14,301 nucleotides of DNA from Oopsacas minuta (lineage: Eukaryota > Animalia > Porifera). The stretch is taken from NCBI GenBank assembly GCA_024704765.1, contig JAKMXF010000052.1, positions 32,485 to 46,785 of the forward strand, read 5' to 3'. Positions 1 through 14,301 of this stretch are shown piece after piece; within the stretch, counting starts at the first letter, position 1; the number at the start of each line of letters is the position of its first letter. The notes below the pieces were generated by a model that saw nothing but the letters and a program-made list of their open reading frames with translations, had not been told where the DNA came from and did not search any database. The position numbers and the translations under genes are program-made.

Positions 1-221
1 TCCCTAAGTAGCTAATAATGAACACAAATAAATACTCCCAGAGCCATAAGGTAGCGAATAAATTCCTAATCCCCTCCCAATGGTACTCTTTCTAACTAAT
101 AAAATATAAAGTGAGTGTGAAATTTATGCTAATTTTATGATTGGATGGAGTTTTGCTGGATTGATTATAATTAATCTTTGTAAAATGGCATATGGTTGGA
201 TTTTTTTCTTGTATTTTCTCC

Positions 222-390
222 ATTTTCGATCATAGTTCTCATTTTTGATCAAAATTCTCCAATATTTCGATCAAGGTTCGACTGGAGACATTTTAGTGGA
301 ACTTTGATCAAAATTTGCCTTTTTCATCATTTGATCAAAGTTGGACATAAGAAATTCTGATCAAAGTTCTACAAAAAATTCGATCAAAAT
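222..390. repeat. Degenerate array of 7 TT(T/C)GATCAAA(G/A)TT-like motifs
   Basis: GATCA cores at 228, 247, 269, 306, 333, 359 and 382, with spacings of 19-37 nt. Confidence 0.7.
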
Positions 391-684
391 ATACAGATGC
401 AATTGATAATACGAAAAATTCTATCTACAGTATTCTGCCCCCTTACAATTATATTTTTTTCCTGTCGATACTACTTCTGTGATTAAGATACCCGGATAGG
501 AGGATAACAGTATTAAAGAGGAGGTTCTATGTGTAGGTTTTTATCCCGGATATATTGCTGATGAATTGCGTGAATGTTGCTATAATGGAACTTATGGGCC
601 CAAAGCTTTAAGCTTTGTGATGAAAGAGACGGGGACGCGAAGTTCCGATGAGTATTTTTTGCATTATTATATGTATCTTATATA

Positions 685-1614
685 CAGGGTGCGGCAAAAG
701 TTTTGTCCCATGGTTTGACAATCAATTATACATAACTATAGTGGAATAATTGCAACCTTATAGGCCCATAATCTATATTGATGTATGTTTACTGAAGAAC
801 TAAAGCATTCTCTCTATTACTAACAAATATTTCTAATTAGAGACATGGAAGCCAAAAGGTCACAAACTTTAGAATTATTTCGTGCAGAGAGGTCCCCAGG
901 CGAGATTTTGAAAATTCTTCAGAGAAAGAATGGGGTAGAAAGTTGATATATCGTACTATCCAGAGATAAAAGGAAACTGGAAGCTTGATAGACAGAGCTC
1001 GAAGTGGTCGTCCGCGTAATGTAAGGACACGAGAACTAAAGGCGAAGATGGAGAAAAGAATCGTCCGAAATTCCCGGCGTTCCATGCGGAAAATGTCTCG
1101 TGACTTTGGAATAAGCTCTAGATCTATTGGACGCGTAGTGCACGATGACCTAGGGTTAAAGTCTCTCAAGCGCGGAAAGTTCAGATGCTTACAAAGGCCA
1201 TTAGAGTAAAGCGGCTGCAAAGAAGTCGATGTCTGTTATTGCGTGCCGCCCAATCAGTCGTTAACAAAATATTGTTCTCCGATGAGAAATTGCTCACAAT
1301 TCAAGAGGTTTCCAACCCTCAGAATGATCGTATCATCTCAAGCAGCGTCCAAGACATCCCAGAACAACTTCGATTCATACCGAGAAGGCAAAAGCCAGCT
1401 TCGGTCATGGTAGGGGGGAAATCTCTGCAAACTCCCGGACTAATCTTATTTTTGTTCCGTCTGGTGTGAAAATCAATTCGAAAACCTATCGTTAACTCAT
1501 TCTGGATCCTGAAGTGAAGGGTTTCGGTTGTAAGAACTTTGGAAATACGAGTTGGACCTTCCAGCAGGATGGAGCTCCAGCTCATACAGCTAACGCTACC
1601 CAACAGTGGTTCGA
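685..1614 (+). mobile_element. Element G: maT (DD37D-like) Tc1/mariner transposon, 3' part cut off at the N
   Basis: TA at 683-684 is followed by a TIR-like CAGGGTGCGGCAAAAGTTTTG, similar to the TIR of element E. A transposase remnant follows. The partner TIR is absent because of the N at 1615. Confidence 0.85.
845..1614 (+). pseudogene. maT-type transposase pseudogene (element G)
   Basis: Reads MEAKRSQ...RSGRPR...ILFSDEK...QNDRI...SVMV(W)G...KINSKTY...WTFQQDGAPAHTA across several frameshifts and stops. The third catalytic residue lies beyond the N, so the family call rests on the other motifs. Confidence 0.9.
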
Positions 1615-1615
1615 N
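1615..1615. other. Single N, probable contig join or assembly gap
   Basis: Unrelated elements lie on each side (G transposase, then Transib A tail) with no TSD between them. Confidence 0.8.
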
Positions 1616-1998
1616 ATTTAAAGGATGTATTTGTTCGATTGATTTCTCACAGTGATCCCATGCTGTTAATGAATCGCAAGTTTTCTATTCCAAGGCCTCC
1701 ATCTAGCCAAGGACTTAGAAGTAGCCAAGATATTTTAGTGAACACCCTTATTCGTGATCATGAAGATCATAATGATGATTAAAAGTAAACCTCTCAATCG
1801 ATTAATAGAAAATTTGGGGAATTTTCACACCTCAGATAGGTGACAATGACGTCATAACTTTGTCACCTGAAGGGAGAGAGATAAATTGATACAATTCGAT
1901 TCGTTGGGTCAAAAACCTATATGACAATAATACATTTTGAGGACCTATGTGCCATCAAAATGCCTATTTCCACATTCTGACCATTTCGTGCCACTGTG
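1616..1998 (+). mobile_element. Transib A, 3' end including the transposase C-terminus
   Basis: 1618-1782 reads LKDVFVRLISHSDPML...DD*, matching IMDIFVRLTSQSYPTL of Transib B at 9/16 positions. The end is CACTGTG (1992-1998), followed by the 5-bp TSD AAGTG (1999-2003). Confidence 0.88.
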
Positions 1999-2741
1999 AA
2001 GTGGCTTTTGTGTAACCTGAATATGTGCTTTTGTGCCCCAATAAATGTTGCTATGTGAATTTACTTGACCGTCAAGGTGGAAATGAGCTTCATCACTTGT
2101 CCACAAGTCTGACAAGAATCCCTGGCATTCCTCAACCTTGCGAATTAAAACGTTGACCATATCTAGTCTCCTGGTAATGTCAGTTGCTGTAAGCTTGTGG
2201 CATATCTGTATCCTGTAAGGAAACATGCCTAGATCTTGTTTCAGCACTCTGAGCATTGTGGTTCTCGAAATTTTGCAAACATTTCCAAAACTTTGTGAAC
2301 GCATTCAGGATGAACGTCTGGGAGATTGCTCCATTGACTTGCGGATCATGGCTATAACCTCTGGTGTGCGGATCATGGCTATAACCTCCGGTGTGCGGAT
2401 TGTAGGCCACCCACACGGGGTATGGCGCCCGTCATACTGCTTGTCTAGGTTCTTGACAGTCCCTTTACTCATAAACTTCAGAAACCACTTGAGAATAGCC
2501 GATCTGGAGGGTGTGTTATCAGTCCCAAACTGTTGTCGGTTGGTTTCATGAATTTTCAAGAAACTGGCCTTCTTCAAATACAGCTCTACGCAAAATGCTC
2601 GCTGCTGGCATGTCCACAACCTGGTAGTTGCTCTTTCAGGAGTATAGTTTGACATATCTAGAATATTAAATGGGTGCAATATATGACGTGGGATGGCATG
2701 CTCAAAAGCTAAAAGTGTTTCCAACCTTTTGAACCACCCAG
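1999..2741 (-). mobile_element. rosa (DD41D) Tc1/mariner element, 5' half with N-terminal transposase remnant (about 2655 to 2004)
   Basis: TIR 2714-2739 is the exact reverse complement of 13509-13534 (26 bp). Protein reads MSNYTPE...QRAFCVELY...LGMFPYRIQ...WTSDEAHFHLDGQVN...QKPL and stops at the Transib A TSD. Confidence 0.9.
2341..2400. repeat. In-frame 27-bp tandem duplication (IRTPEVIAM twice) in the rosa transposase
   Basis: GCGGATCATGGCTATAACCTC(T/C)GGTGT at 2341-2367 and 2368-2394, one mismatch between copies, plus a partial third copy. Confidence 0.95.
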
Positions 2742-2743
2742 CA

Positions 2744-3089
2744 CTTGATTTTAGATATCTTATGTTCACGAAATATGTACAAGATACAGTTATGGGAAAT
2801 AAGATATTTAGAATTAGCACAGTCGAAATATATAAAGTACACCAGATCAGTAACATTCGATTCTGTAATTGCTCCTACAGGTTCATTGAAATTGTGGCTA
2901 AATTTGGAAATCATAAAGCAGCAATTTTCCCATCAATATTTCGCATCTTTGAAGAAGAAACTTTACAGCTTCTAGGGTCTCAATCGCTTAGATACTTTAA
3001 ATGAGAATCATTTAAACAATAAAAAAAGAAATGAAACCATCAAATACGGAATCAATTTTTTGTCTACTCTTTGCTTCTCAACCACTGTG
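2744..3089 (-). mobile_element. Transib B, 5' end
   Basis: CACTGTG at 3083-3089 is followed by TAACG (3090-3094), the same 5-mer that precedes CACAGTA at 10570. The segment abuts the rosa TIR, whose TA TSD reads CA at 2742-2743. Confidence 0.85.
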
Positions 3090-3519
3090 TAACGTCCTAT
3101 TTGCTATTTGTCTGTAGGATATCGCCTGCTTTCTGATTATTATCTGATTGACCCTCTGCTTCAGTGCTGTGGTACGAACAAATCGTGGTCGACCAGAACG
3201 AGGCATGTCTTTCACTGTCTCATACTTGTTGTATCTTGAAATAGTCCGATAAATAAAAGATCGTGGATAATTTTTCGACCCGAGTGATTTCAATATTCCT
3301 ACTTGTCCATGTCGATTCAACCAAAGTTGGCTAATTGCAGACCTCTTAGCCTCAATAGGTTTAATAAGACACAGTATTACAGTAAGCTTGGAACCAATGT
3401 TGTAGTATGATATATAATAGAGTCACATAGAATAGTTGAATCAGAAATGACATCGAAAATGGTTGCGTAATAAAGTTTCTGCAATTCGAATTTCGTTGCA
3501 GAACTTTTGGCTCACTTTG
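3090..3519 (-). mobile_element. Element E (maT, DD37D-like), 5' part with N-terminal transposase remnant
   Basis: TIR 3495-3519 matches 8377-8401 at 22/25 positions; TA at 3520-3521. Protein reads (I)EAKRSAI...FIYRTISRY...RSGRPR...RQIANRTL and continues at 10564 once Transib B is removed. Confidence 0.9.
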
Positions 3520-3700
3520 TATGAAAGTTAGTTATCTTAACTTTTAAGAACTGTACATGACAAGCCGTCTGGTTCCAGATTCACATGTCCCCGACGTGAG
3601 GGGTCCATATCCCTTCAGAATATGTACATTTACGCCTATGGAAAAAGTTTACGTGTTGTCTTACAAGGTTGGTAGGTTTATCCATGTGAAAAATCTAGCT

Positions 3701-3719
3701 GTTAAAACCTGGTTTTAAC
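3701..3719. repeat. 19-bp palindrome GTTAAAACC-T-GGTTTTAAC
   Basis: Perfect 9-bp arms with a 1-nt centre. A nearby 11-bp inverted repeat lies at 3749-3759 / 3825-3835. Confidence 0.9.
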
Positions 3720-4419
3720 CGTCCTATCTACAACCTCTTGTGTGGACAAAACTGGACAAACCCCTATATCAATTCAGGTTTTGTTTGGTTATGTCCAGGT
3801 AATTTATTGAATATATATTAGGCCTTGTCCAGTTTACTAGTGTTTTAAATAATCTTTGTTTTCTTATGTTCTATCAGGTTTCCAAATTATAGTAGAACCC
3901 CCATAAACTAACACTGGAAGTCCTGCAAAATCTGACAATTTTATATACCAATAAGCGTTGGACACTGCAGAGTAATACACTGCATGATAAGGCGATTTTG
4001 ATAAATCGACAGATTTTATATTTATCAAGAGTATGTGCGACATTAGCACCGATACTGTCGCACGCATTGTTCAATTTCATGAAGTTTTGGTTTTGTCCGG
4101 TGCTCACCAGATTTTGTTCACTGTCCCCTCCAAACCTCAATCCAGAATATATTTATCCTGCTCTACCAGCTCGATCGAGAAAGGTTTTTTTCAAATTGTA
4201 TAGTTGTATTGTTATCCTGTACCGTAATTATATTTGATTTGTAACGTGATTATGTATGCTACTGTATTAATTATTATTTAAATCTTTGTTTGAGTCCTCT
4301 CCTTCTATTACAATAATTCCCAATAAATTGTTATTAGTGTTGTGAATAGCTTCATGTCATTATCAAACAATTTACCTTATCCACAAGTGTTCCAAAAGTT
4401 CAAGTCAAAGACTATATAA

Positions 4420-4479
4420 TGTGAGGTTTGCAATTAACATCGTGGCTATGCGAAATATCGAAGGCACTTGGTTGCTCAT
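4420..4479 (+). pseudogene. Degenerate C2H2 zinc-finger remnant, probably the N-terminus of the recombinase gene
   Basis: CEVCN*HRGYAKYRRHLVAH (C-x2-C-x11-H-x3-H) with one in-frame stop, on the same strand as the recombinase. Confidence 0.45.
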
Positions 4480-5059
4480 GTTAATAATGGTAAATTCCTT
4501 TGCAGAAAGTATACAAAATATTGTTCAAGTTCGCCAAACAAGATGTGATACAAAATATAAAAATTCAACAAAATTACAGTCAGGATAAAGATGTAATTTT
4601 CGTAATGAATTGAGTGTAGAATTTAAACGTATAGTATTGGATATTAAACTACATCTTGTCACAGTTCATAAGTTATGCAAATTCAGTCAAATTTGAAGAG
4701 TTAGAGTCAGAAGTGTTGAGACAAAAGCAATTGAAAGACTTACAAAATTCTCTATAATGGACAATATGGAAATGAATAATATTGTAAACCCATTGAATAA
4801 TTCAACGATACGATCAGAATAAATGCCAGATGATTCACTTGTGTATTGCAATGAATTCGATTATCAGAGTGTACTCCACATTTGAATATATCACCATTTG
4901 AGATCAGTTCTGGAGATGAATTTGATTCGGAAACTATTACATCAGACGTACTCTTAACACTTCTAGGACATGTAAGTTGGGTTGTTGGTCAAGGAAGGTA
5001 AGAAGTTAATAGAAGTTTTCCATGATAACATTGATCGTTGCTCAGCTGCTTCAGGTTTA

Positions 5060-6718
5060 TAGATCGTGAGCTGATAATTCAAGAATTCCAATCATTTTTA
5101 CTTCACAAGGGGAGGCGGTGGTAGAAAAACACGCCAGTTAAAGGTGATATGTGTCAATTTGATCTGTAGTTAATGAACGTGGTTGGCATCAGCTGTGGGA
5201 TCCTAATCAACTCAATCACTATGTCAGTTCTGCTACATGTAGTCCGTCAACAATGTATTGTCGTTTGCGTGTATACGAAAGATTTATTCGCTTTCTGAGA
5301 ATGCAGATACCTTCACTGCTACCTACTGTAGAACAGTTGAAAGGAATAGATTCTATGTTGTGCTATTTAAAAGAAGCAATTGGAAAAGATCGTCATTTGC
5401 GAATAAAGGATACGATGGCAGTTAGTCGAGAACGTATGCCAAAGTCTTTTGATGTATTACGTTTATGGCATTCACGTCGTGGATTGGTTGAAGTTACACA
5501 GCAATTTGTACATATTGACGAGTAACGAAGGATATCAGTGAGTTTGTGTTTATGCAACTGCATAATTATCTTATAGTTAAAATTCTAATAGCAACCGCTC
5601 AACGTTCTGGAATAATTGAGGGAATGCTGATTAAAGAGGTGTTAGATACAGAAGGTAATTCAAAATGTGACAACCTCGTATATATTTACGTTGCAAATCA
5701 TAAGACAGGATCTCTTCAAGCTGCTATTATTTATCTCGATGTTGAAATCTATTTTTACCTTGTCACTATGATTACGACAGTTCTTCCCTTGTTATCATCT
5801 ATTAGCGATATCTCTTCGCGTGATGAAAAGAACTGTCATGTCTTTCAGACATGGACTTCTGATAGATTACGTACAAGTAGCATAACCACTTGTTTGCGTT
5901 CAGGATTGAAACATTTTGGTATTCATGATCCCGATGCCTGCCCTACGAATTATCGTAAAGCAGCCTCTACATTGATCAGCATGCACAAACCTTCAATGCA
6001 AGAATCACTTAGTCAATTTATGTGTCATGCTCGTTCAACAACTGAGCGACACTACCGTCATCATGTGTCCCATAGGGGATTGTCCTCGGGTTTCAATGAA
6101 CTGGAGAAATGTCAAGCTCTGCCTAGCAATGACGATTTTAGTACCACATCTGAGAAGAGTCTTAGTAACCGATCTTCTAAGCCTACTACTCAAATGGTTA
6201 CACATTCTGATAATGTCACTGAACAAATTAATGAGCCAAAAAGTTCTAATGCTGTTTAAGATGATCATATTGTTGACTCGGATAATGATTTGGACGATAC
6301 TTTATCAGGCATTTCCATGTGTCCATGGATATCAATAGTGATTCAGAAAGATCATGTCTGATTGGTGATTCAGCTTTTCAGTTCAGTACATGTACACCTT
6401 CTGAAATCTCACATGTTTCTGTTCCCTCTTAGCCTTTAAATGACCCCCGATACACTTGTAAGCGAAATGGTGAAAAAGCATATTTGTGGATCAATTCCAA
6501 GAAGATACTTTTTTTTCTCAACTTTCGGTAATTTGATTGATAATGCATTACACCATATTCCTGTTGCAGCTAGCGAGGTTTAGTGTTAGCTTGGAGTACA
6601 GAACAATTTTTCCCTTATGGATTAACTTAGTTAACAAGTTTGGCCAATCTTTGGCCTTGAAAAAAGTTACAGATAAGATACGGACGTTTGCTCGAAATAA
6701 TCGAGTGAAGAAGTAAAC
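5060..6718 (+). pseudogene. Tyrosine recombinase pseudogene, Crypton-like
   Basis: ORF 5546-6259 carries TAQRSG (R), HKTG (K), TNYRK (HxxR-like), FMCH (H) and TERHY (Y). Upstream broken frames read FL..RGGGGRK and PSTMYCRLRVYERFIRFL, resembling a core-binding domain. An acidic linker and a KKVTDKIRT tail run to about 6718. Outer boundaries are approximate. Confidence 0.8.
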
Positions 6719-7034
6719 AATGCGAAGTTAGGAATTGTGTAGGATTTTTAACTGGTTAGCAGACGTCTAGGTCTGTAACGCTAGNCGAATATAGACTACA
6801 CAATATATAGGAGCGGGAAAGAGTATACAATTTATGACAATATATTTGTGTGGTCGAATACTTTTGTCCATTGACTGTATATTTGTTTCCATAGATAGGG
6901 GCATAAATATATGTAATATCCCAATGCTGTCCAGCGTCAAAATTGAATTATAATTTTGGACGCCACCATTTTGGCTTGAAGGACCATTTGCAAATTGACA
7001 ATGGCCTTACCGACAGGACAGCTGAATTAGTTTA

Positions 7035-8374
7035 CAGGGTGTTTCATAATTGATGCCCTATTCAGATTTAACATACTTTATAGAATACCCATTAGTACTA
7101 TTTTACTAGTTGGACTATTTAGCATATATCTCAATAATATGACTGCGTAGTAGCTTTTTACGTATCTTGCTTCATTCTAAACTATATTTTTCATTAGCAT
7201 ATTTGAATAATTGTATTCTATTAGTTGATACAAAGAAAATGGTCAAAGAACAGACTATTCAAACTCGTAATAGAGCAATTGGGATTTTGCAGGGTGGGTT
7301 GACCAAGAAATCGGTTGCTCAACGGATTGGAGTTAATATCCGAACAGTTCGTCGTTGGTGGTTATGCTTTTTTGGAGGTCAGTAGCTCAAAAACATAAGG
7401 GGTCGTGGCCAAAAACATCCGTCCCAATCCCAGCAAAGTTAGTCATCACTTCCACCCAGAAAAAACACCAATCAACCAAATCCATCTCTCGGAAGTTGAA
7501 ATCCAAGGGATATTCAATCTCATGCAGCATCGTATATCGCCATTTACGGAATACCCTTAACTTCAAGGCATATAAACGCCAGCAGCAACCCAAATTAACC
7601 GATAAACAGAAAGAAAACCGATTGAAATTCTGTAAAGCATGTAAAGACTGGACAACAGAGGTTTGGAAAAGGGTTATTTTCTCTGATGAATGCCCCTTTG
7701 AACTTATCCATGCACCAAATCGGTAGAATGATCGAATTTGGGCACCTGACAAGTCAAATATTCAACCAGTAGAACTGGTGAAACACCCTACTAAAATACA
7801 GGTGTGGGGGATGATCTCTTACGCAGCTGTCTCCGATTTGCACATGATAGATCCTGGACAAACAATAACTGGAGATTACTATGTGAACGAAAATCTGACA
7901 AAGACTCTTTGTGTCACATATAAATGAAAACGAAAAACTGGATCCACTATCCAGAGAAAGATAGTACACAACATGTCTCATTCAATTTTCCAACAAGACT
8001 GTGCACCAGCCCATCACTCGAAAAAGTCTCAAGAATGGTTAAAAAATAATCTGCCTTCGTTCTGGGAGAATGGTATTTGGCCTGGCAACTCGCCAGATCT
8101 TAATCCAATAAAATGTATGGGCAATAATGAAAAGTGAGATGGAAACTATGGCTCCTCCCAACAATCTGAAAATGCTTGAAAATAACATAAAACTGGCCTG
8201 GCCAAGACTTTCGTGTGATATTATAGAGTCGTTATATAATGGGATGCCAAATAGAGTAAAGAAGTGCATCAAACTACATGGTAGTTACATTACAAAGTGA
8301 ATTAATTGATTGGTTGCTATTAGTGCTGCGTTAATTCATTGTGTATGATAGGGCATCAATTATGAAACACCCTG
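7035..8374 (+). mobile_element. Element F: full-length (1340 bp) Tc1-like transposon with DD37E spacing
   Basis: Perfect 26-bp TIRs CAGGGTGTTTCATAATTGATGCCCTA (7035-7060 / 8349-8374) and TA TSDs at 7033-7034 and 8375-8376. Confidence 0.97.
7239..8300 (+). pseudogene. Transposase pseudogene of F
   Basis: MVKEQ...VIFSDE...NDRIW...VWGMIS...FQQDCAPAH...WPGNSPDLNPI(E). There are 37 residues between the second D and the inferred E, which was lost in a 1-nt deletion. Several stops and frameshifts. Confidence 0.92.
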
Positions 8375-8376
8375 TA

Positions 8377-8868
8377 CAGGGTGAGCCAAAAGTTTTGCAA
8401 CAAACTTAACATTATTTAATACTCAATGTATGATGCTATGTATTAAGAAATTTCGTCATATATGAATTAAATGAATATATTAATTAGTTCTAAATCCTTG
8501 TTCCTAAAATATGAGAGCTAATTCATTTCAAATCTCTTGCCTCTCGCTTTGATGTACATTTTCAATCATTCAGGGAATTTTTGCATGCTAGCGCTGCTTC
8601 CTCCAGGTCTAAATCATTCCATGAACGAAGAATTGCCCTTTTCAAAGCCTGAACTGACTTATGAATGTGGTTGTTTATTATTGCTTCCATTCTACCCGAC
8701 AAATAGTAATCACAGGGGTTGAGGTCTGGGGTTGAATGGGGCTATTCATCCTTGTTCAAAAAATTAGGGATGTTGTTAGAAAGCTAGTCTTGATTAATCT
8801 TAACTGTATAACTGGGCTCGTCCTGCTGAAACAACCAATTTTCTCCATTCATGAAGGTATTACTTATA
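8377..8868 (-). mobile_element. Element E, 3' part (catalytic C-terminus and TIR)
   Basis: TIR CAGGGTGAGCCAAAAGTTTTGCAAC at 8377-8401. Protein reads WLFQQD...TPDLNPCDYYL...GKRFE. Spacing between the last two Ds is 36 as observed, inferred to be 37 before a small deletion. Confidence 0.9.
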
Positions 8869-10199
8869 CAGTGTGTCCCATAAAAAACTGAATAGGTAAA
8901 TCATTTCAAAGAATATTATTATTCGAAGATTTTTCCAATGTTTTCCGAAATATCTAAAGTAATTTAGTGGTCCTTCAGTATTTTATCTTATAACTCCTAC
9001 TTTCCTGAACCAGCTGTCATCTTTTGGGCATGGAAGCCCATTAAGGTCGAAGAAAATCTGTATCTATCGCCTCCCTAATTTTCAATAGTTGTTATTTGAG
9101 GTCTCGAATATTTTTAGGGTTGCGTTTGATTAATTCTAACTTAATCCAGGCGAACAAATTTCAATAGGTTTAACATCTGGACTTTGACTTGGCCAGTCTA
9201 TTCTGTTTTTGTTTCATATTTTTGTCAATCCATGCCTTGGTTAGTTTGGCTGTGTAATTTGGGTTATTATCCTACACCAAAAACCACTCAGAACGATGAA
9301 AAACAGTTGCTTGTGTTATCATGTGCCCTCTCTAGTATATTCACAAGGAGAGCTGCTGTGAGTATTTCTTGGAAAATACATAGTGAAAACGTTCCTACAG
9401 ACAAAAAGCTGCCCAAATGTTGACTTTTTGGGTATGTTCCACTGTTGTTCGCAGCCTCTCAGTACCTTCCTTGGTCCACATGCGAATTCTCCCACGTGCG
9501 ATTCAAATCGAAGCCTCATCGGCGAATATAGCATGTTGCCAATCATTTTTAAGATTTTTCTCTCCTCATTCAAGTCGTGATATTCGATTTATCTTAGATA
9601 GTAGAGGAATGGGGCTAGGGTAGGGCTTCGTATACCTTAACTTCTTCAAAGCACGTGCAACCGTATTCTTTGGGGTGGTAACTGGACACTTATCTGCCAT
9701 AGCTCTAAGAGAAATGTAACGGGTTCTCCGAATTTGTTGTGCGATACTGTTCGTTATTAATGGGAGTAATTTCCCTGGCCTCCCACTCCCTTTTCTTCGT
9801 TTAATTGGCAAACATTCACTTATTCGGGATTTTAGGTTGTAAACCGTTGATAATGAGACACCTACAATTCTAGATATTCCTTAACTGAGTGTTTATTCCC
9901 CTTTGGAAGTATAATTGCGTGTTCCCTTTTCTCAGTCTGAGACATGGTGAAAAATAAATGCTATTAAATCAGAATGAACATATAGATATAAATGATTATA
10001 GCAAAAGTGTTTGTGTCATGATGATGCAATAATAAATATGTGCAAAGATTTTTATAATATATGGGAAATGTATTCCCAATAAAAACATGACTTAATGGAA
10101 TATAAAATTTTAAGTAGATATGTCTAATACAAACTATGAAACTCATAAAATGCTAGATGTAAGATAATTGAATAAATTCAGATTTTATGGGACATACTG
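8869..10199 (-). mobile_element. Element D: full-length (1331 bp) Tc1-family transposon inserted in E; transposase pseudogene about 9945 to 8975
   Basis: Imperfect TIRs CAGT(G/A)TGTCCCATAAAA(AA/T)CTGAAT, TA TSDs at 8867-8868 and 10200-10201. Motifs GSGRP, IFADEAS, DNNPNYTAK and DWPSQSPDVKPIE (about DD34-36E; a frameshift prevents an exact count). Removing D restores KHVLPISNTF in E. Confidence 0.92.
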
Positions 10200-10569
10200 T
10201 AGGCAGAACATGTTTAGATAGAATCAGTTTCTGCTATAAATGGTGTTAATTTTGGCGTCCTCTGGAACAAAAACCATGCTTGTTTTCCCTTTTGCCGATA
10301 TTCCAGCCCATACCATCACAGACTTTGGATGTAAGGTTTTTGCAACATGTTTAAATTCCCTAGGTATGTTTTCACGCGATATAGATTAACACACGCGAGT
10401 TTTGGCTCTTGTATTTTTCCTCGATGCTCCATAGTTTCTCCTCTGAAAATACGATATTTTCATGATCAACATTTTTGAGACGGGTCACGAGCATATGACA
10501 ACGTTGCAATCTTTTCCCTATTATGAGTGGAGTTGAAGCTTTGGTTTTAGTTTTTGTTAGAAATTAACG
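10200..10569 (-). mobile_element. Element E, middle part
   Basis: KRLQRC...NIVFSEEK...HPKSVMVWAGIS.KGKT..VFVP...KIN. Bounded by the TA TSD of D and the TAACG TSD of Transib B (10565-10569). Confidence 0.9.
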
Positions 10570-10942
10570 CACAGTAGTTTGATAGGGCAGTTAGTAAAGA
10601 ATAGCTATTTGGTGTGAGATAACAATGTGAATGTACTATTTACATATAGATTATTAAATATAAGGAACCAATACATCTTGTCATAACAAGTATATGGCCT
10701 AAAATTTCCAAGTTATGATGTCATTGACATATGTGAAACTTTAAATTTTCTTCAGTAAATACATTTTACTCGACTTTATTGCCATAAAATCTATTAATTA
10801 CAAATGGGTTATCCGTATTTGGCAATCACCTTAAACTTAGCACTTTGGTTCTAGGGCTTGTATTTATAGAGTTATGAGGTCATACTTATGATGGAATTTA
10901 TCTTATTGATTTACAAAATATACACTATATTCATACTTAAGT

Positions 10943-13056
10943 TCATGATAGGCAATCTGTATTGGAGGTTAAAGTCGTGAATAAAGTTTGTATACTAGTT
11001 TTCTGATTGTTCATAGCATTGCAGCATTTAGATCTCGTTGTGTGTCCAGATTGACCACATCGTTCACAAGTCAAAATTGTTCGATAGTTTACTAAGGTTG
11101 GGTAACTTTGAGAGGTTAATCTGACGAAGATATCCATAATATTGGTCTCAAAACTAACTTTACGAGCTAAATTCTCCCGATATTTTCTAACTGATTTGGT
11201 GCATGATTCTTTGCCTTCTGCTAAAAATGCCTTTAAGCCACAGCTGGAATTCGACTCACGTATTAATTCCTCGGAATGGGCTAAGAGCTTGTGCAGGGTT
11301 GGAGTCATGCTAGCCCAGGGGAAAGAATCTAAGATTACAAGGTAGGTATCCTTACACAATTTTCCCAATTCCAAAATGTTAGCCTTGTGACTTGAATTGA
11401 ATACCCGAAGAATGGCTGAAAGCTGAGTATGTATCTTTGATAAGATTAGGCGATATTGTATTGCTACAGTTGATAGAATGCATTCAAGGTATTCAGTTTC
11501 ATCAGAAAAGGCTCTTCTAGCAACATTCCCTGTTGAGGTGGTTCCACCGCTAGAATTAGGCTGGTCAACCTTTAATCCTGTCTTCTCCTGAATAAATGTT
11601 TGAAGGAATTTCATTGACTCCTTGATAACTGGTGAAGTTGGGGACCAGGTAAACTTTTCGATGCGTAGATGATATACCAGCAAATTAAACCACCTAAAAT
11701 TGGTTTAATTGTGTGAAGATAAATTCTCAATGATCAATGGAGTGCTAGATTACTTACCTAAATACGCCTGTGTAAGAATGAAGCTGAGATGCTGGATGCA
11801 TGTTAATCTCTGAAATTGGTTGATGAGTTAACTTGAAGCGTTCATTAGTCGAAAGAGCAAAGAACGACTCAATGTCATCAATTTGTGTAAATAACTCGAT
11901 TGCATCTGTGATATTTCTGTTGATGGGGAACCTTTCAAGAACTTAATTCCGGTCCTTCAGATCTTTATACGTGGAAGTGCACATCTGACAACTGGCTCCT
12001 CCAGCTCCAGAGAGAATGGCTGCCATCTTCCCATCAAACATTGAGCGATAATATCGACATTGACAACACCATTTTCTAAAGGAATCCCATTTTGCAACAT
12101 CGCTGTATCGGGATTAATCATAGTTTCCATGAAGGTACGAATATTTTCTTCGCATTCTGTCGCAGCGCAGAGAAAATAGGTCTTTGAGAGAAGTGTGGAT
12201 TAGGGGATTTATTCTGCCAAACAATCCTGTTAGTTACAGTGTGGATGGAGATGGGCTTGAAACCAAACAGAATGAAGGTTTGGTGAAAGTATTAGTTGTC
12301 TGCTGGTTGTAGATAGTGTGACAACCAGAACCATCTAAGCCATCTGCGATTTTAAATGTGAGCGGGAATTCTTCACTTGTGGGCGATCTACCATTGAGAA
12401 TATTCTTTCCAGGGTTTTCTGAACTTGAAGACAATATGGTGCGTGTGTGCCTATTGGTTTACCTGGATTAGGATACAAAGTTATACTGGAACGCGAAATC
12501 ATGACATCTCTCAGATTAGCAAACTTACTGTAAGATGGGAATCTATATTGTCTGGTAGAAGTGTGTGACGTAGTTGAGTGTATTTTCGTCTGCCCACTTG
12601 AAGTAAATCCAGTAGGAATAAGGCTTTATCAACTGGAACATGCTTGTTACTGAGGTTACAGAATCTTCCACTGACAATAATCTCTTTGGCTACCGTAGCA
12701 ACCTGACAATCATTCTCCTCATTTGTTCAATAGTTGTAATGAGAGTGTTGCAATGCTCATTTCTGTAGTACTCAATAATTGAGAGTGACTAAATGCATTT
12801 CTAGCAGACTTGATAATCGAATACGCTATTGTTGCAGAGATAGATCATCAAGATGCTTTCTATGACTAACTGAATGAATGGGAACTTCACCATCATCAGA
12901 AGACGACTCTAGTACATCACAAACATGATTTTTCTTTAACTCAGGTTTCTTGGGAATGTTAGAATGCCGCCATTCTCCTTCTAAACAATCTAAAGATCTC
13001 TTCGCCTTCTTGAATCTGTCACGAATTCTTAACAGCAACGTTTCCAAGAGTTTCAT
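10943..13056 (-). pseudogene. Transib/RAG1-core-like transposase pseudogene
   Basis: Motifs GLDGSG (first D), WQNKSP...RPIF, MFDGKM (second D), SCQMC and LHKLLAH (zinc ligands), GNVARRAF, AEGKES (catalytic E) and a C-terminal CERCGQSGHTTRSKCC. Multiple stops and frameshifts upstream of the open frame 10943-11683. The true start may lie further upstream. Confidence 0.9.
11694..11757 (-). other. 64-nt spliceosomal intron in the Transib B transposase gene
   Basis: AG|GTAAGT...ATTTTAG|G. Removal fuses LHSYTGVF-R-WFNLLVYHL in frame, resembling the Transib LH.W.R.F..LL motif. Confidence 0.8.
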
Positions 13057-13506
13057 ATAATCAGTCTATTTCAAAGTGTTCTTTGAAATATTTCGTCGTT
13101 TTTAAGACACAATTAATATTGTCTTTCAGGATTCTGACCTATTCGAGGAGGGACTTTGGAAAAGTTAACTCTTGTGTCATTATTTTCAAGAAATTCCGAA
13201 AAATATGTTGTATTATTCAGTAGATTATATATATAAGTCACTATAATAAATTTCAAGAAAGAAATTCAATACTATTTCATTCCATTGTTGCAGTATGCTA
13301 AAATGGGAATTTCCTAGCAACGAAAAGTTGTAATTGAATGTCAATGAAAATTATTGGCTGCGCACTATTTCGGGTTTTGTAGCTTTAGATTATGTTTTTA
13401 GGAATCGTAACGCGTGTATCCGATTCATTTTGCGCTGTTGCTTTGTGCTGTTTATTTTTCCTGACACTTTAAGTATTCCTCTTTGTAAAATTCTGCATGG
13501 ATTTTA

Positions 13507-14181
13507 CCGGGTGGTTCAAAAGGTTGGAAACACTATATGCATTTTCCCTTCATTCCCCCAATATTTCGATGAACATCAATGTAACATATTTAATGTCTAC
13601 TCAAAATCTAATTTTAAATATGTGCTAAGTTTAAGCATCCAGGCTCCATAGGAAGTGGTGTTTTAGGGCATCTGCTCGAGGTGCCTACCGTTTACCTACT
13701 GACATTTGCGTAGTCTCAGGATAAAATTCTGCATAACATTATGGAGAACATCTCTTTTTATGGCCCCTATCTCCTCTATGATCTTTTCCTTGAGTTGGGC
13801 AATGTTCCTGGGCTTTGATGCATAGACCCGATCCTTGAGAAACCCCCATAACAAATAATCTGAGGGACTCAAGTCTGGAGAAAGGGGTGGCCATTCGATC
13901 GCACACTTTTTACTGATAATCCGCGACTTAAAATGATCTTTCAACCACTTGATTGTGCTGTTCGACGTATGGGGAGTAGCTCCATCCTGCTGCAAATACT
14001 GCCTAGTCCTTCTTGTGCCACATGTAGGATCTAGCTCCTCCCAAAACCTCTCCAAGATTACTATGTATCGCTCATAGTTCACAGTTACAGTTATCCCATT
14101 TTCATTTTTAAAATTAGAACGGTTCAATAATTTTCTTTCCTGATAGTGCTGCCCAAACACTCACTTTTGGGGAGTGAAGTG
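13507..14181 (-). mobile_element. rosa (DD41D) element, 3' half with catalytic C-terminus
   Basis: TA followed by TIR CCGGGTGGTTCAAAAGGTTGGAAACACT. Protein reads LHSPKVSVWA...VTVN.ERY...QQDGATPH...WPPLSPDLSPSD, with 41 residues between the last two Ds. TSD AAGTG at 14177-14181. Confidence 0.92.
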
Positions 14182-14301
14182 CACAGTGGCACGGCATATG
14201 GAAATAGGTGAAAAAAATATAACCTCAAATTGCTTTATAGTGTTGATACTTGAATTCAGCACCCCCACAAACCTCGGAAAACATTTGACATCTCTACAAT
14301 A
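14182..14301 (+). mobile_element. Transib A, 5' end (runs off the window)
   Basis: CACAGTGGCACG...TGGAAATAGG mirrors the end at 1963-1998 and is preceded by the same AAGTG TSD. Confidence 0.88.

Follow-up and report, generated by a model that had tools for sequence, protein, structure and literature searches.

Unequal ends of two transposons in Oopsacas minuta

The window analysed here, a stretch of 14,301 nucleotides (nt), forms the final 14,301 bases of contig JAKMXF010000052.1 (46,785 bp; assembly GCA_024704765.1) of the glass sponge Oopsacas minuta and holds the ends of two DNA transposons, A and B, which we assign to the RAG1-like Transibs. Element A is represented by a 3' portion of 383 bp (1616–1998, plus strand), comprising a transposase tail, a 3' untranslated part with a hairpin and the 3' end itself, and by a 5' portion of 120 bp (14182–14301, plus strand). 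Window position 14301 is the end of the contig, so the 5' end of A lies only 120 bp from it; these 383 + 120 bp are all of A in the window, and its interior lies outside. Element B, on the minus strand, is likewise split into a 5' portion of 346 bp (2744–3089) and a 3' portion (10570–13504) that carries a broken RAG1-like gene. Within the latter, the RAG1-like open reading frame (ORF) at 10946–11704 (minus strand) matched part of the O. minuta protein LOD99_10705, the gene for which is on the same contig, with 100% identity over 99% of the length.

All four element ends could be read directly and were identical to their description in a first-pass annotation of this DNA, which had proposed two-part ends with short and long spacers. 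The 5' end of A (14182–14208, plus strand) consists of the heptamer CACAGTG, a 10-nt spacer (GCACGGCATA) and the inner block TGGAAATAGG, a layout that recurs in the related loci L009, L010 and L011; its 3' end (1998–1963, minus strand) consists of CACAGTG, a 19-nt spacer (GCACGAAATGGTCAGAATG) and the same inner block TGGAAATAGG, with a homologous 19-nt-spacer 3' end in L010. The 5' end of B (3089–3064, minus strand) has CACAGTG, a 10-nt spacer (GTTGAGAAGC) and the inner block AAAGAGTAG (family consensus AAAGAATAG), and its 3' end (10570–10604, plus strand) has the decayed heptamer CACAGTA, a 19-nt spacer (GTTTGATAGGGCAGTTAGT) and the inner block AAAGAATAG. The equal placement of ARTAG claimed for all four ends was also found, at nt 22–26 in both short ends and nt 31–35 in both long ends. 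Within each element the first 10–12 nt are common to both ends and are followed by 5 versus 14 nt and then by the inner block. The predicted 5-bp target duplications proved exact on direct reading, with AAGTG flanking A (left copy 14177–14181, right copy 1999–2003) and TAACG flanking B (3090–3094 and 10565–10569). Furthermore, when read-derived contigs were compared with window positions 1–6000, yielding summed depths and one junction, a contig spanning 3037–3856 covered the 5' end of B without differences; this comparison gives the best-supported indels only, and rare spacer-length variants could escape it.

Because CACAGTG is common and the DNA is AT-rich and repeat-rich, chance matches were considered as the source of these ends. 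The heptamer count by itself was not significant (4 found versus 1.25 expected; 12 of 200 shuffles reached 4), and one of these four, the CACAGTG at 1648, was rejected as an element end, being a chance match that sits in the coding tail of A (…SHSDP…). For the copy of B in the window, which is decayed (a heptamer ending in A, one inner-block change and a broken reading frame), the shared 9-mer beyond nt 12 matches at only 8 of 9 positions, a value reached in 284 of 2000 shuffles. The corresponding figure was 23 of 2000 for A and 4–11 of 2000 for intact copies of B and of the related families A2 and C. The signal above chance thus comes from the two-part structure and not from the heptamer count, and the two exact 5-bp duplications add to it. 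With a RAG1-like gene between the ends, and with independent copies that carry the same ends within different duplications (L002, L003, L004, L007, L009 and L011), an origin by chance is refuted and its probability is negligible.

Organization of the nest and orientation of the ends

Between the parts of A and B lie two halves of a mariner-like element, M, on the minus strand. The 5' half (1999–2743) contains a DUF4817 helix-turn-helix domain (Pfam E value 5e-10) and an inverted-repeat arm at 2704–2739, and the 3' half (13505–14181) contains a weak Pfam match to the C-terminal part of DDE_3 and an inverted-repeat arm at 13509–13544. Taken cyclically on the minus strand, the order is the 5' part of B (3089–2744), M (2743–1999 and 14181–13505, split by A) and the 3' part of B (13504–10570). 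The two parts of B are 92% and 94% identical, respectively, to positions 7757–8101 and 8104–11046 of L002 and L003, where B copies are uninterrupted (7757–11046, 3290 bp; duplications CTCTT and CCTAC). These copies align to both parts in the window with only a 2-bp gap at the site of M, which confirms the B-M-B order. Judged from its sequence, the window holds a nest of dead DNA transposons: M inserted at a TA within B (3.3 kb, minus strand), and A later inserted into M.

Both end pairs point outward: the 3' end of A closes at 1998 with the body of the element to its left, the 5' end opens at 14182 with the body to its right, and B is arranged likewise at 3089 and 10570. The ends of each element can therefore be paired only in the cyclic reading, with 14181 joined to 1999 across A. 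The cyclic unit may be a tandem repeat, a circle or an assembly cycle through high-copy A; its break falls within A and at a single N (1615). Bearing on a tandem duplication, P0001 occurs only once in the assembly, and the depth of the flank (~45) equals that of positions 401–600. One read-derived contig bridges the 5' end of B and its flank at this flank depth, and a loose end at 2743 corresponds to B copies without M. Relative to the flank, summed contig depth was ~35–50× for the 3' part of A and ~12–18× for B, a rough indication that both elements are multi-copy.

Transposases of the A and B clades

The B transposase gene, mapped by tblastn, runs from ~13180 down to 10946 (minus strand) and is RAG1-like and broken. 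For the B ORF and for a 480-residue N-terminal piece of the L002 copy, the best solved relative was the Helicoverpa zea transposase HzTransib (6pqn; phmmer E values 4e-10 and 2e-7), and the second was the amphioxus RAG1-like protein BbRAG1L (6b40). Matches of the window ORFs to Pfam RAG1 stayed below the cut-off (17.9–22 bits versus 25), so that Transib membership rests on the solved-structure search together with the predicted fold. The C-terminal tail of B (CERCGQSGHTTRSKCC) contains a CCHC knuckle, C-x2-C-G-x2-G-H-x6-C-C, apparently of the CTT*/CTT1 kind, with the consensus CxxCxxxGHxxxxC among relatives. D284 in the motif G-x-D-G-S-G is nearly invariant in alignment A1, the window copy being broken, and the stretch AEGKES of the B tail aligns with SEEASE of HzTransib; D284 and the AEGKES stretch are putatively the sites of the first aspartate and the final glutamate in the DDE triad.

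For A, the window holds the last ~54 codons of the transposase (1621–1779, plus strand; LKDVFVRLISHSDP…), and tblastn with the C-terminal part of the L006 protein matched 1621–1749. This tail shows 56% identity to the O. minuta protein P0223 and likeness to P0064, the protein of A2. From 1616, the frame of A is carried upstream by a read-derived loose end as …LARKFSFEEN, parallel to NLARKVSFETN of B. The orientation of A rests on the coding tail and on its relatives, the rest of the transposase being outside the window. Both the coding tail and the ends match RAG1-like elements in L006, L009 and L010, and A-type ends accompany RAG1-like genes in L006, L009, L010 and L011; A thus appears to be a member of a multi-copy family with a RAG1-like gene. 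The assignment of both elements to Transibs, as first annotated, is borne out by HzTransib as best solved relative for B and by these matches for A.

The divergence of the two elements, which had also been proposed, agrees with a B-type C-terminal region that has ~51% identity to its counterpart in the sister family A2 (A itself offers its ~54-codon tail only) and with a knuckle found in B only. No cysteine knuckle was present in the C-terminal tails of the A clade (window A, P0223, P0064, P0097 and P0230), yet asymmetric ends occur in both clades (A tail at 1621–1779, plus strand, versus B at 10946–11100, minus strand). By sequence comparison, we place A and B in two related clades of Transibs. 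A RAG2-like kelch gene was not called in the complete copies of 2.9–3.6 kb, which leave no room for one; the uninterrupted B copies (3290 bp) hold RAG1-like gene pieces only, and A2 copies measure 2.9–3.0 kb.

The hairpin of the A 3' untranslated part (1839–1868) has an 8-bp stem, GGTGACAA…TTGTCACC, around TGACGTCA, which we take to be the core of a CRE/ATF site, and lies ~135 bp inside the 3' end. An identical stretch of 18 nt is found at the same distance from an A2 3' end (L006, 8739–8756), with shorter matches in L004 and L002.

Constancy of spacer lengths among related elements

To survey the relatives, a census covered ~190 kb of related loci, with the heptamer followed by any of three inner blocks at a distance of 3–30 nt. 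At 5' ends the spacer was 10 nt in 11 of 11 cases. Ten 3' ends were real: A1, C and five ends of the B and B2 families had 19 nt, and three A2 ends, drawn from two assemblies, had 20 nt. Another five matches combined a degenerate heptamer with a single mismatch in the inner block and had no surrounding element. The freely varying spacers that would have refuted the first-pass annotation were thus not seen, and wherever a gene is visible the short end is on its upstream side, in agreement with that annotation. The TAG of the inner block falls at nt 24–26 in 5' ends, at nt 33–35 in 3' ends and at nt 34–36 in A2 3' ends. The fixed 9-nt offset that had been proposed holds for A1, B, B2 and C and fails for A2, in which three copies have 10/20 spacers.

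The families could be followed in individual loci. The C element in L004 is flanked by the duplication CATGA and has an offset of 9, counted as 9/18 with a 10-nt inner block or as 10/19 with a 9-nt block; B2 in L007 and A1b in L010 are both 10/19, the A1b ends having no matching duplication; and the A2 elements in L009 and L011, within the duplications TATAG and AACCA, are 10/20. Altogether, the 5-bp duplications of relatives were CTCTT, CCTAC, CATGA, GTGTA, TATAG and AACCA. Since a different 5-bp duplication is found at each site, copies with this layout did transpose. A common end plan was observed, in which a 12–13-nt terminal block (CACAGTG and ~5 family-specific bases) is followed by a spacer and by a 9–10-nt inner block ending in TAG, which ends at nt 26 upstream of the gene and at nt 35 (36 in A2) downstream; layout and polarity are constant across copies and families.

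A strict search for end pairs with a perfect duplication and similar tips failed for L006, L007 and L008, because of a decayed heptamer, a one-base slip in the duplication and two head-to-head copies, respectively. Both copies in L008 are of B2; read on the minus strand, position 6596 marks an end of the 5' type and position 9397 one of the 3' type, and one copy is without a visible 5' end. The locus L005 was tried as a counter-example lacking a shared inner block and was rejected as such; its 5' block resembles that of C and its 3' block that of B, in the usual positions. In addition, a 933-bp non-autonomous A-like element (L002, 2011–2943; duplication TATAA) has by eye one 5'-like and one 3'-like end, and its inner-block match (7 of 9) was not above chance (1468 of 2000 shuffles).

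The constancy bears on whether the asymmetry is a tolerated accident, that is, an ancestral 9-bp indel in one end of elements whose enzyme relies mainly on the terminal 12–17 bp and would be little affected by where the inner block lies. A view of this kind has been published for RAGL-B (PMC7204232); all families described here are related, so that one ancestral event would be enough, and the 20-nt spacer of A2 would be a tolerated change of 1 nt. The sequence of the 5' spacer, however, has diverged among families (GCATA, CCCCC, TTTGC, GAAGC, AATGC and others) with no change in length across proteins that are ~50% identical, identical inner blocks are kept at both ends within families, and insect, pelagophyte and hemichordate elements show an asymmetry of 9–11 bp with the same polarity (PMC1131882, PMC9435367, PMC10462144). 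We consider a mere accident quite improbable.

A predicted nonamer-binding domain in the B family

We next turned to the protein. An AlphaFold model of the N-terminal 480 residues of the B-family transposase (mean predicted local distance difference test score 81) matched RAG1 at Z ~20 and HzTransib at Z 16.6. Model residues 104–170 superpose on residues 389–456 of the RAG1 nonamer-binding domain in its DNA-bound form (3gna_A) over 67 of 68 residues with a root-mean-square deviation of 2.6 Å (Z 7.1). RAG1 chains that contain the nonamer-binding domain align from model residues 102–119, whereas RAG1 chains without it, and HzTransib chains, align from residue 179 or later. The B-family transposase is thus predicted to carry a nonamer-binding domain of the RAG1 type, which, by analogy with RAG1, probably reads the inner block. 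At about the place of the GRPR/K motif of the hemichordate transposon PflRAGL-A, the B-family protein has S-H-R-K.

Ahead of the region resembling the nonamer-binding domain, the model contains three N-terminal helices (residues 1–65 of the B protein; L002, 8428–8620) that are weakly like the helix-turn-helix domains of mariner Mos1 and TnsB (Z ~4, with 4.2 for mariner) and could form an accessory DNA-binding domain.

How the unequal ends may be read

Up to ~nt 55, 3' ends resemble one another across the A, B, B2 and C clades and carry AAATGG at nt 13–18 and AGATAG near nt 49–54; the 5' ends have a distinct A-rich motif in common, at nt 29–36. As the 5' ends are mutually homologous and the 3' ends are too, the layout was inherited, and A and B do not serve as the separate witnesses of the offset for which they had been taken. 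Likewise, the 10/19 ends had been likened to the recombination signal sequence (RSS) of V(D)J recombination; AAATGG is conserved within the long spacer, which is therefore not neutral in the manner of an RSS spacer.

These motifs could mean that the two ends are functionally different, each with binding sites of its own, as in the P element, Tn7 and Mu. The extra 9–10 nt would then be a recognition element specific to the 3' end, perhaps for the N-terminal helical domain or for a host factor, and the offset would be a by-product of descent. The shared 3' sequence to ~nt 55, the distinct motif of the 5' ends, the unlike inner blocks of the two L005 ends and the extra three-helix region of the model are all in line with such an arrangement. 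In most families, though, the same inner block of 9–10 nt is present at both ends, which points to one domain acting at two distances, and the helix-turn-helix likeness is weak; separate binding sites therefore seem to us unlikely as the main basis of the asymmetry, with a real if minor chance of being correct.

We favour, with a probability of roughly 0.75, a nest of dead Transibs in which A and B come from two related sponge clades with identically built unequal ends that are read as follows. A transposase dimer would cut at the heptamer, and the RAG1-type nonamer-binding domain predicted for the B family would read the TAG-ending inner block at both distances. The CCHC tail of B may contact the bases adjoining the heptamer, by analogy with the amphioxus enzyme, in which the knuckle tail contacts bases beside the heptamer (PMC9435367, PMC7204232). 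In RAG, a hinged dimer of nonamer-binding domains accommodates the 12/23 difference (PMC10462144), and a hinged domain dimer might in the same way accommodate the end difference of about one turn (9–10 bp) in the sponge elements, without a RAG2 partner.

Several observations weigh against this reading. The offset is 10 nt in A2 and 9 in the other families, and in L005, which comes from another assembly, the two inner blocks are unlike each other and their expected positions follow by homology to other families only. The nonamer-binding domain is predicted from the structure model of the B family, sequence searches of the N-terminal region for such a domain having returned nothing. The motif conserved in the long spacer is as compatible with an additional binding site peculiar to that end as with pure geometry, and for RAGL-B it has been argued that the terminal 15–17 bp and the CTT* tail dominate and that asymmetry matters little (PMC7204232). 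Neither the sequence evidence nor any natural test supports a preference for 10/19 over 10/10 or 19/19 pairs. At the locus itself, both end pairs face outward, and the single N at 1615 marks a join without any bridging read-derived contig, at which the Tc1/mariner-like piece on the left (683–1615) and the tail of A on the right both continue into other sequence. The stronger proposal, that a single-protein sponge Transib with a nonamer-binding domain and without RAG2 enforces the pairing of short with long ends about one helical turn apart, is put forward as tentative, with the odds somewhat against it.

Other features of the window

Positions 1–400 consist of a very high-copy repeat with short units of the 'GATCAAA' type (summed depth 2000–6500 versus ~45 for the flank), and many read-derived joints were found between its copies. 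A mariner/Tc1-like element of 1344 bp (7033–8376) is bounded by perfect inverted ends of 29 bp (TACAGGGTG…), and its transposase, which is broken, has an HTH_Tnp_Tc3_2 match at 7355–7726; related end fragments lie at 683–705, 3489–3521 and 8375–8407. ORFs at 5163–6256 (plus strand) have a weak match to phage integrase (tyrosine recombinase; E value 0.011).

Relation to known systems

The principle of asymmetric ends had been annotated as not new, and indeed the same design, including the 9-bp offset, has been published (PMC9435367, PMC1131882, PMC10462144). Kapitonov and Jurka (2005) described Transib families with an RSS12-like 5' end and an RSS23-like 3' end (PMC1131882). Insect Transibs (Transib5 of Drosophila; Transib2_AG and TransibN1-N3_AG of Anopheles) resemble the sponge elements in having a single RAG1-like gene, a 5-bp duplication, a CAC-type heptamer and two-part ends that are short at the 5' and long at the 3' side. 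They differ in an offset of ~11 bp (12/23 ±1) and an A-rich nonamer, whereas the sponge elements have an offset of 9–10 bp (10/19, 10/20), a block ending in TAG and a heptamer that is exactly CACAGTG. HzTransib, which among solved structures is nearest in sequence, shares the fold of the catalytic core (Z 16.6), and since its solved chains align from model residue 179 on, the sponge region resembling the nonamer-binding domain has no aligned counterpart there.

According to Tao et al. (2022), asymmetric ends and a CTT1 tail are found throughout Subgroup I of the Transibs (PMC9435367). Asymmetric ends likewise occur in all sponge families seen, with a knuckle tail, a candidate CTT1, in B and none in the A clade. 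In AanRAGL of Aureococcus, a 13-bp terminal and a 10-bp inner element lie 4 and 13 bp apart (PMC9435367). The block design and the 9-bp offset are the same as in the sponge, where a 12–13-nt block is followed by 5/14 or 3/12 nt and a 9–10-nt block, but AanRAGL has a RAG2-like gene and the sponge elements do not. A ctenophore Transib in the supplement of the same study has CACAGTGGGGAT, then a spacer of unequal length and then ATGACATTAAG (PMC9435367); the paper and the supplementary material covered mention no sponge, and no published description of a sponge Transib was found in the literature searched.

PflRAGL-A of Ptychodera flava has a heptamer, TR2, a spacer with a 10-bp asymmetry and a nonamer, and asymmetric ends were argued to be ancestral (Martin et al. 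2023; PMC10462144). Like the sponge elements it has, besides the heptamer, a conserved adjoining region and a nonamer-like inner block, and its RAG1-like protein contains a nonamer-binding domain (predicted, for B, in the sponge); unlike them it has RAG2L, the GRPR/K motif and an A/T-rich nonamer, in place of the S-H-R-K and TAG-ending block of sponge B. The V(D)J RSS and the sponge ends have the heptamer CACAGTG in common, and both are two-part signals with two classes of spacer that differ by about one helical turn; a nonamer-binding domain homologous to that of RAG1 is predicted in the sponge. In contrast, RSSs are not genomic transposon ends, they have spacers of 12 and 23 bp and depend on RAG2, and their rule has been shown experimentally, whereas the sponge ends have a long spacer that is conserved in sequence and are known here from sequence alone.

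Taken together, the unequal Transib ends of O. minuta are real and conserved, but their design is already in print for Transib and RAG-like transposons. Because the literature already holds both asymmetric ends in these elements and the idea that asymmetry is ancestral, the overall picture is unchanged; the elements come from a new phylum, and the predicted nonamer-binding domain of the RAG1 type is a modest addition. It is debated whether the 12/23 rule arrived with RAG2, as one view holds (PMC4840297), or was inherited from transposon ends. If short/long pairing were enforced in these elements, RAG1-like transposases of the earliest-branching animals would have followed a 12/23-like rule before any RAG2 partner was present, which would run counter to the view that RAG2 brought in the rule (PMC4840297). 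The sponge elements contribute, from a phylum outside the bilaterians, several Transib families that are related to one another, in part young, and keep the 9–10-bp asymmetry; with many young copies in O. minuta, they provide material for comparison and possible substrates with which such a rule could be tested biochemically.

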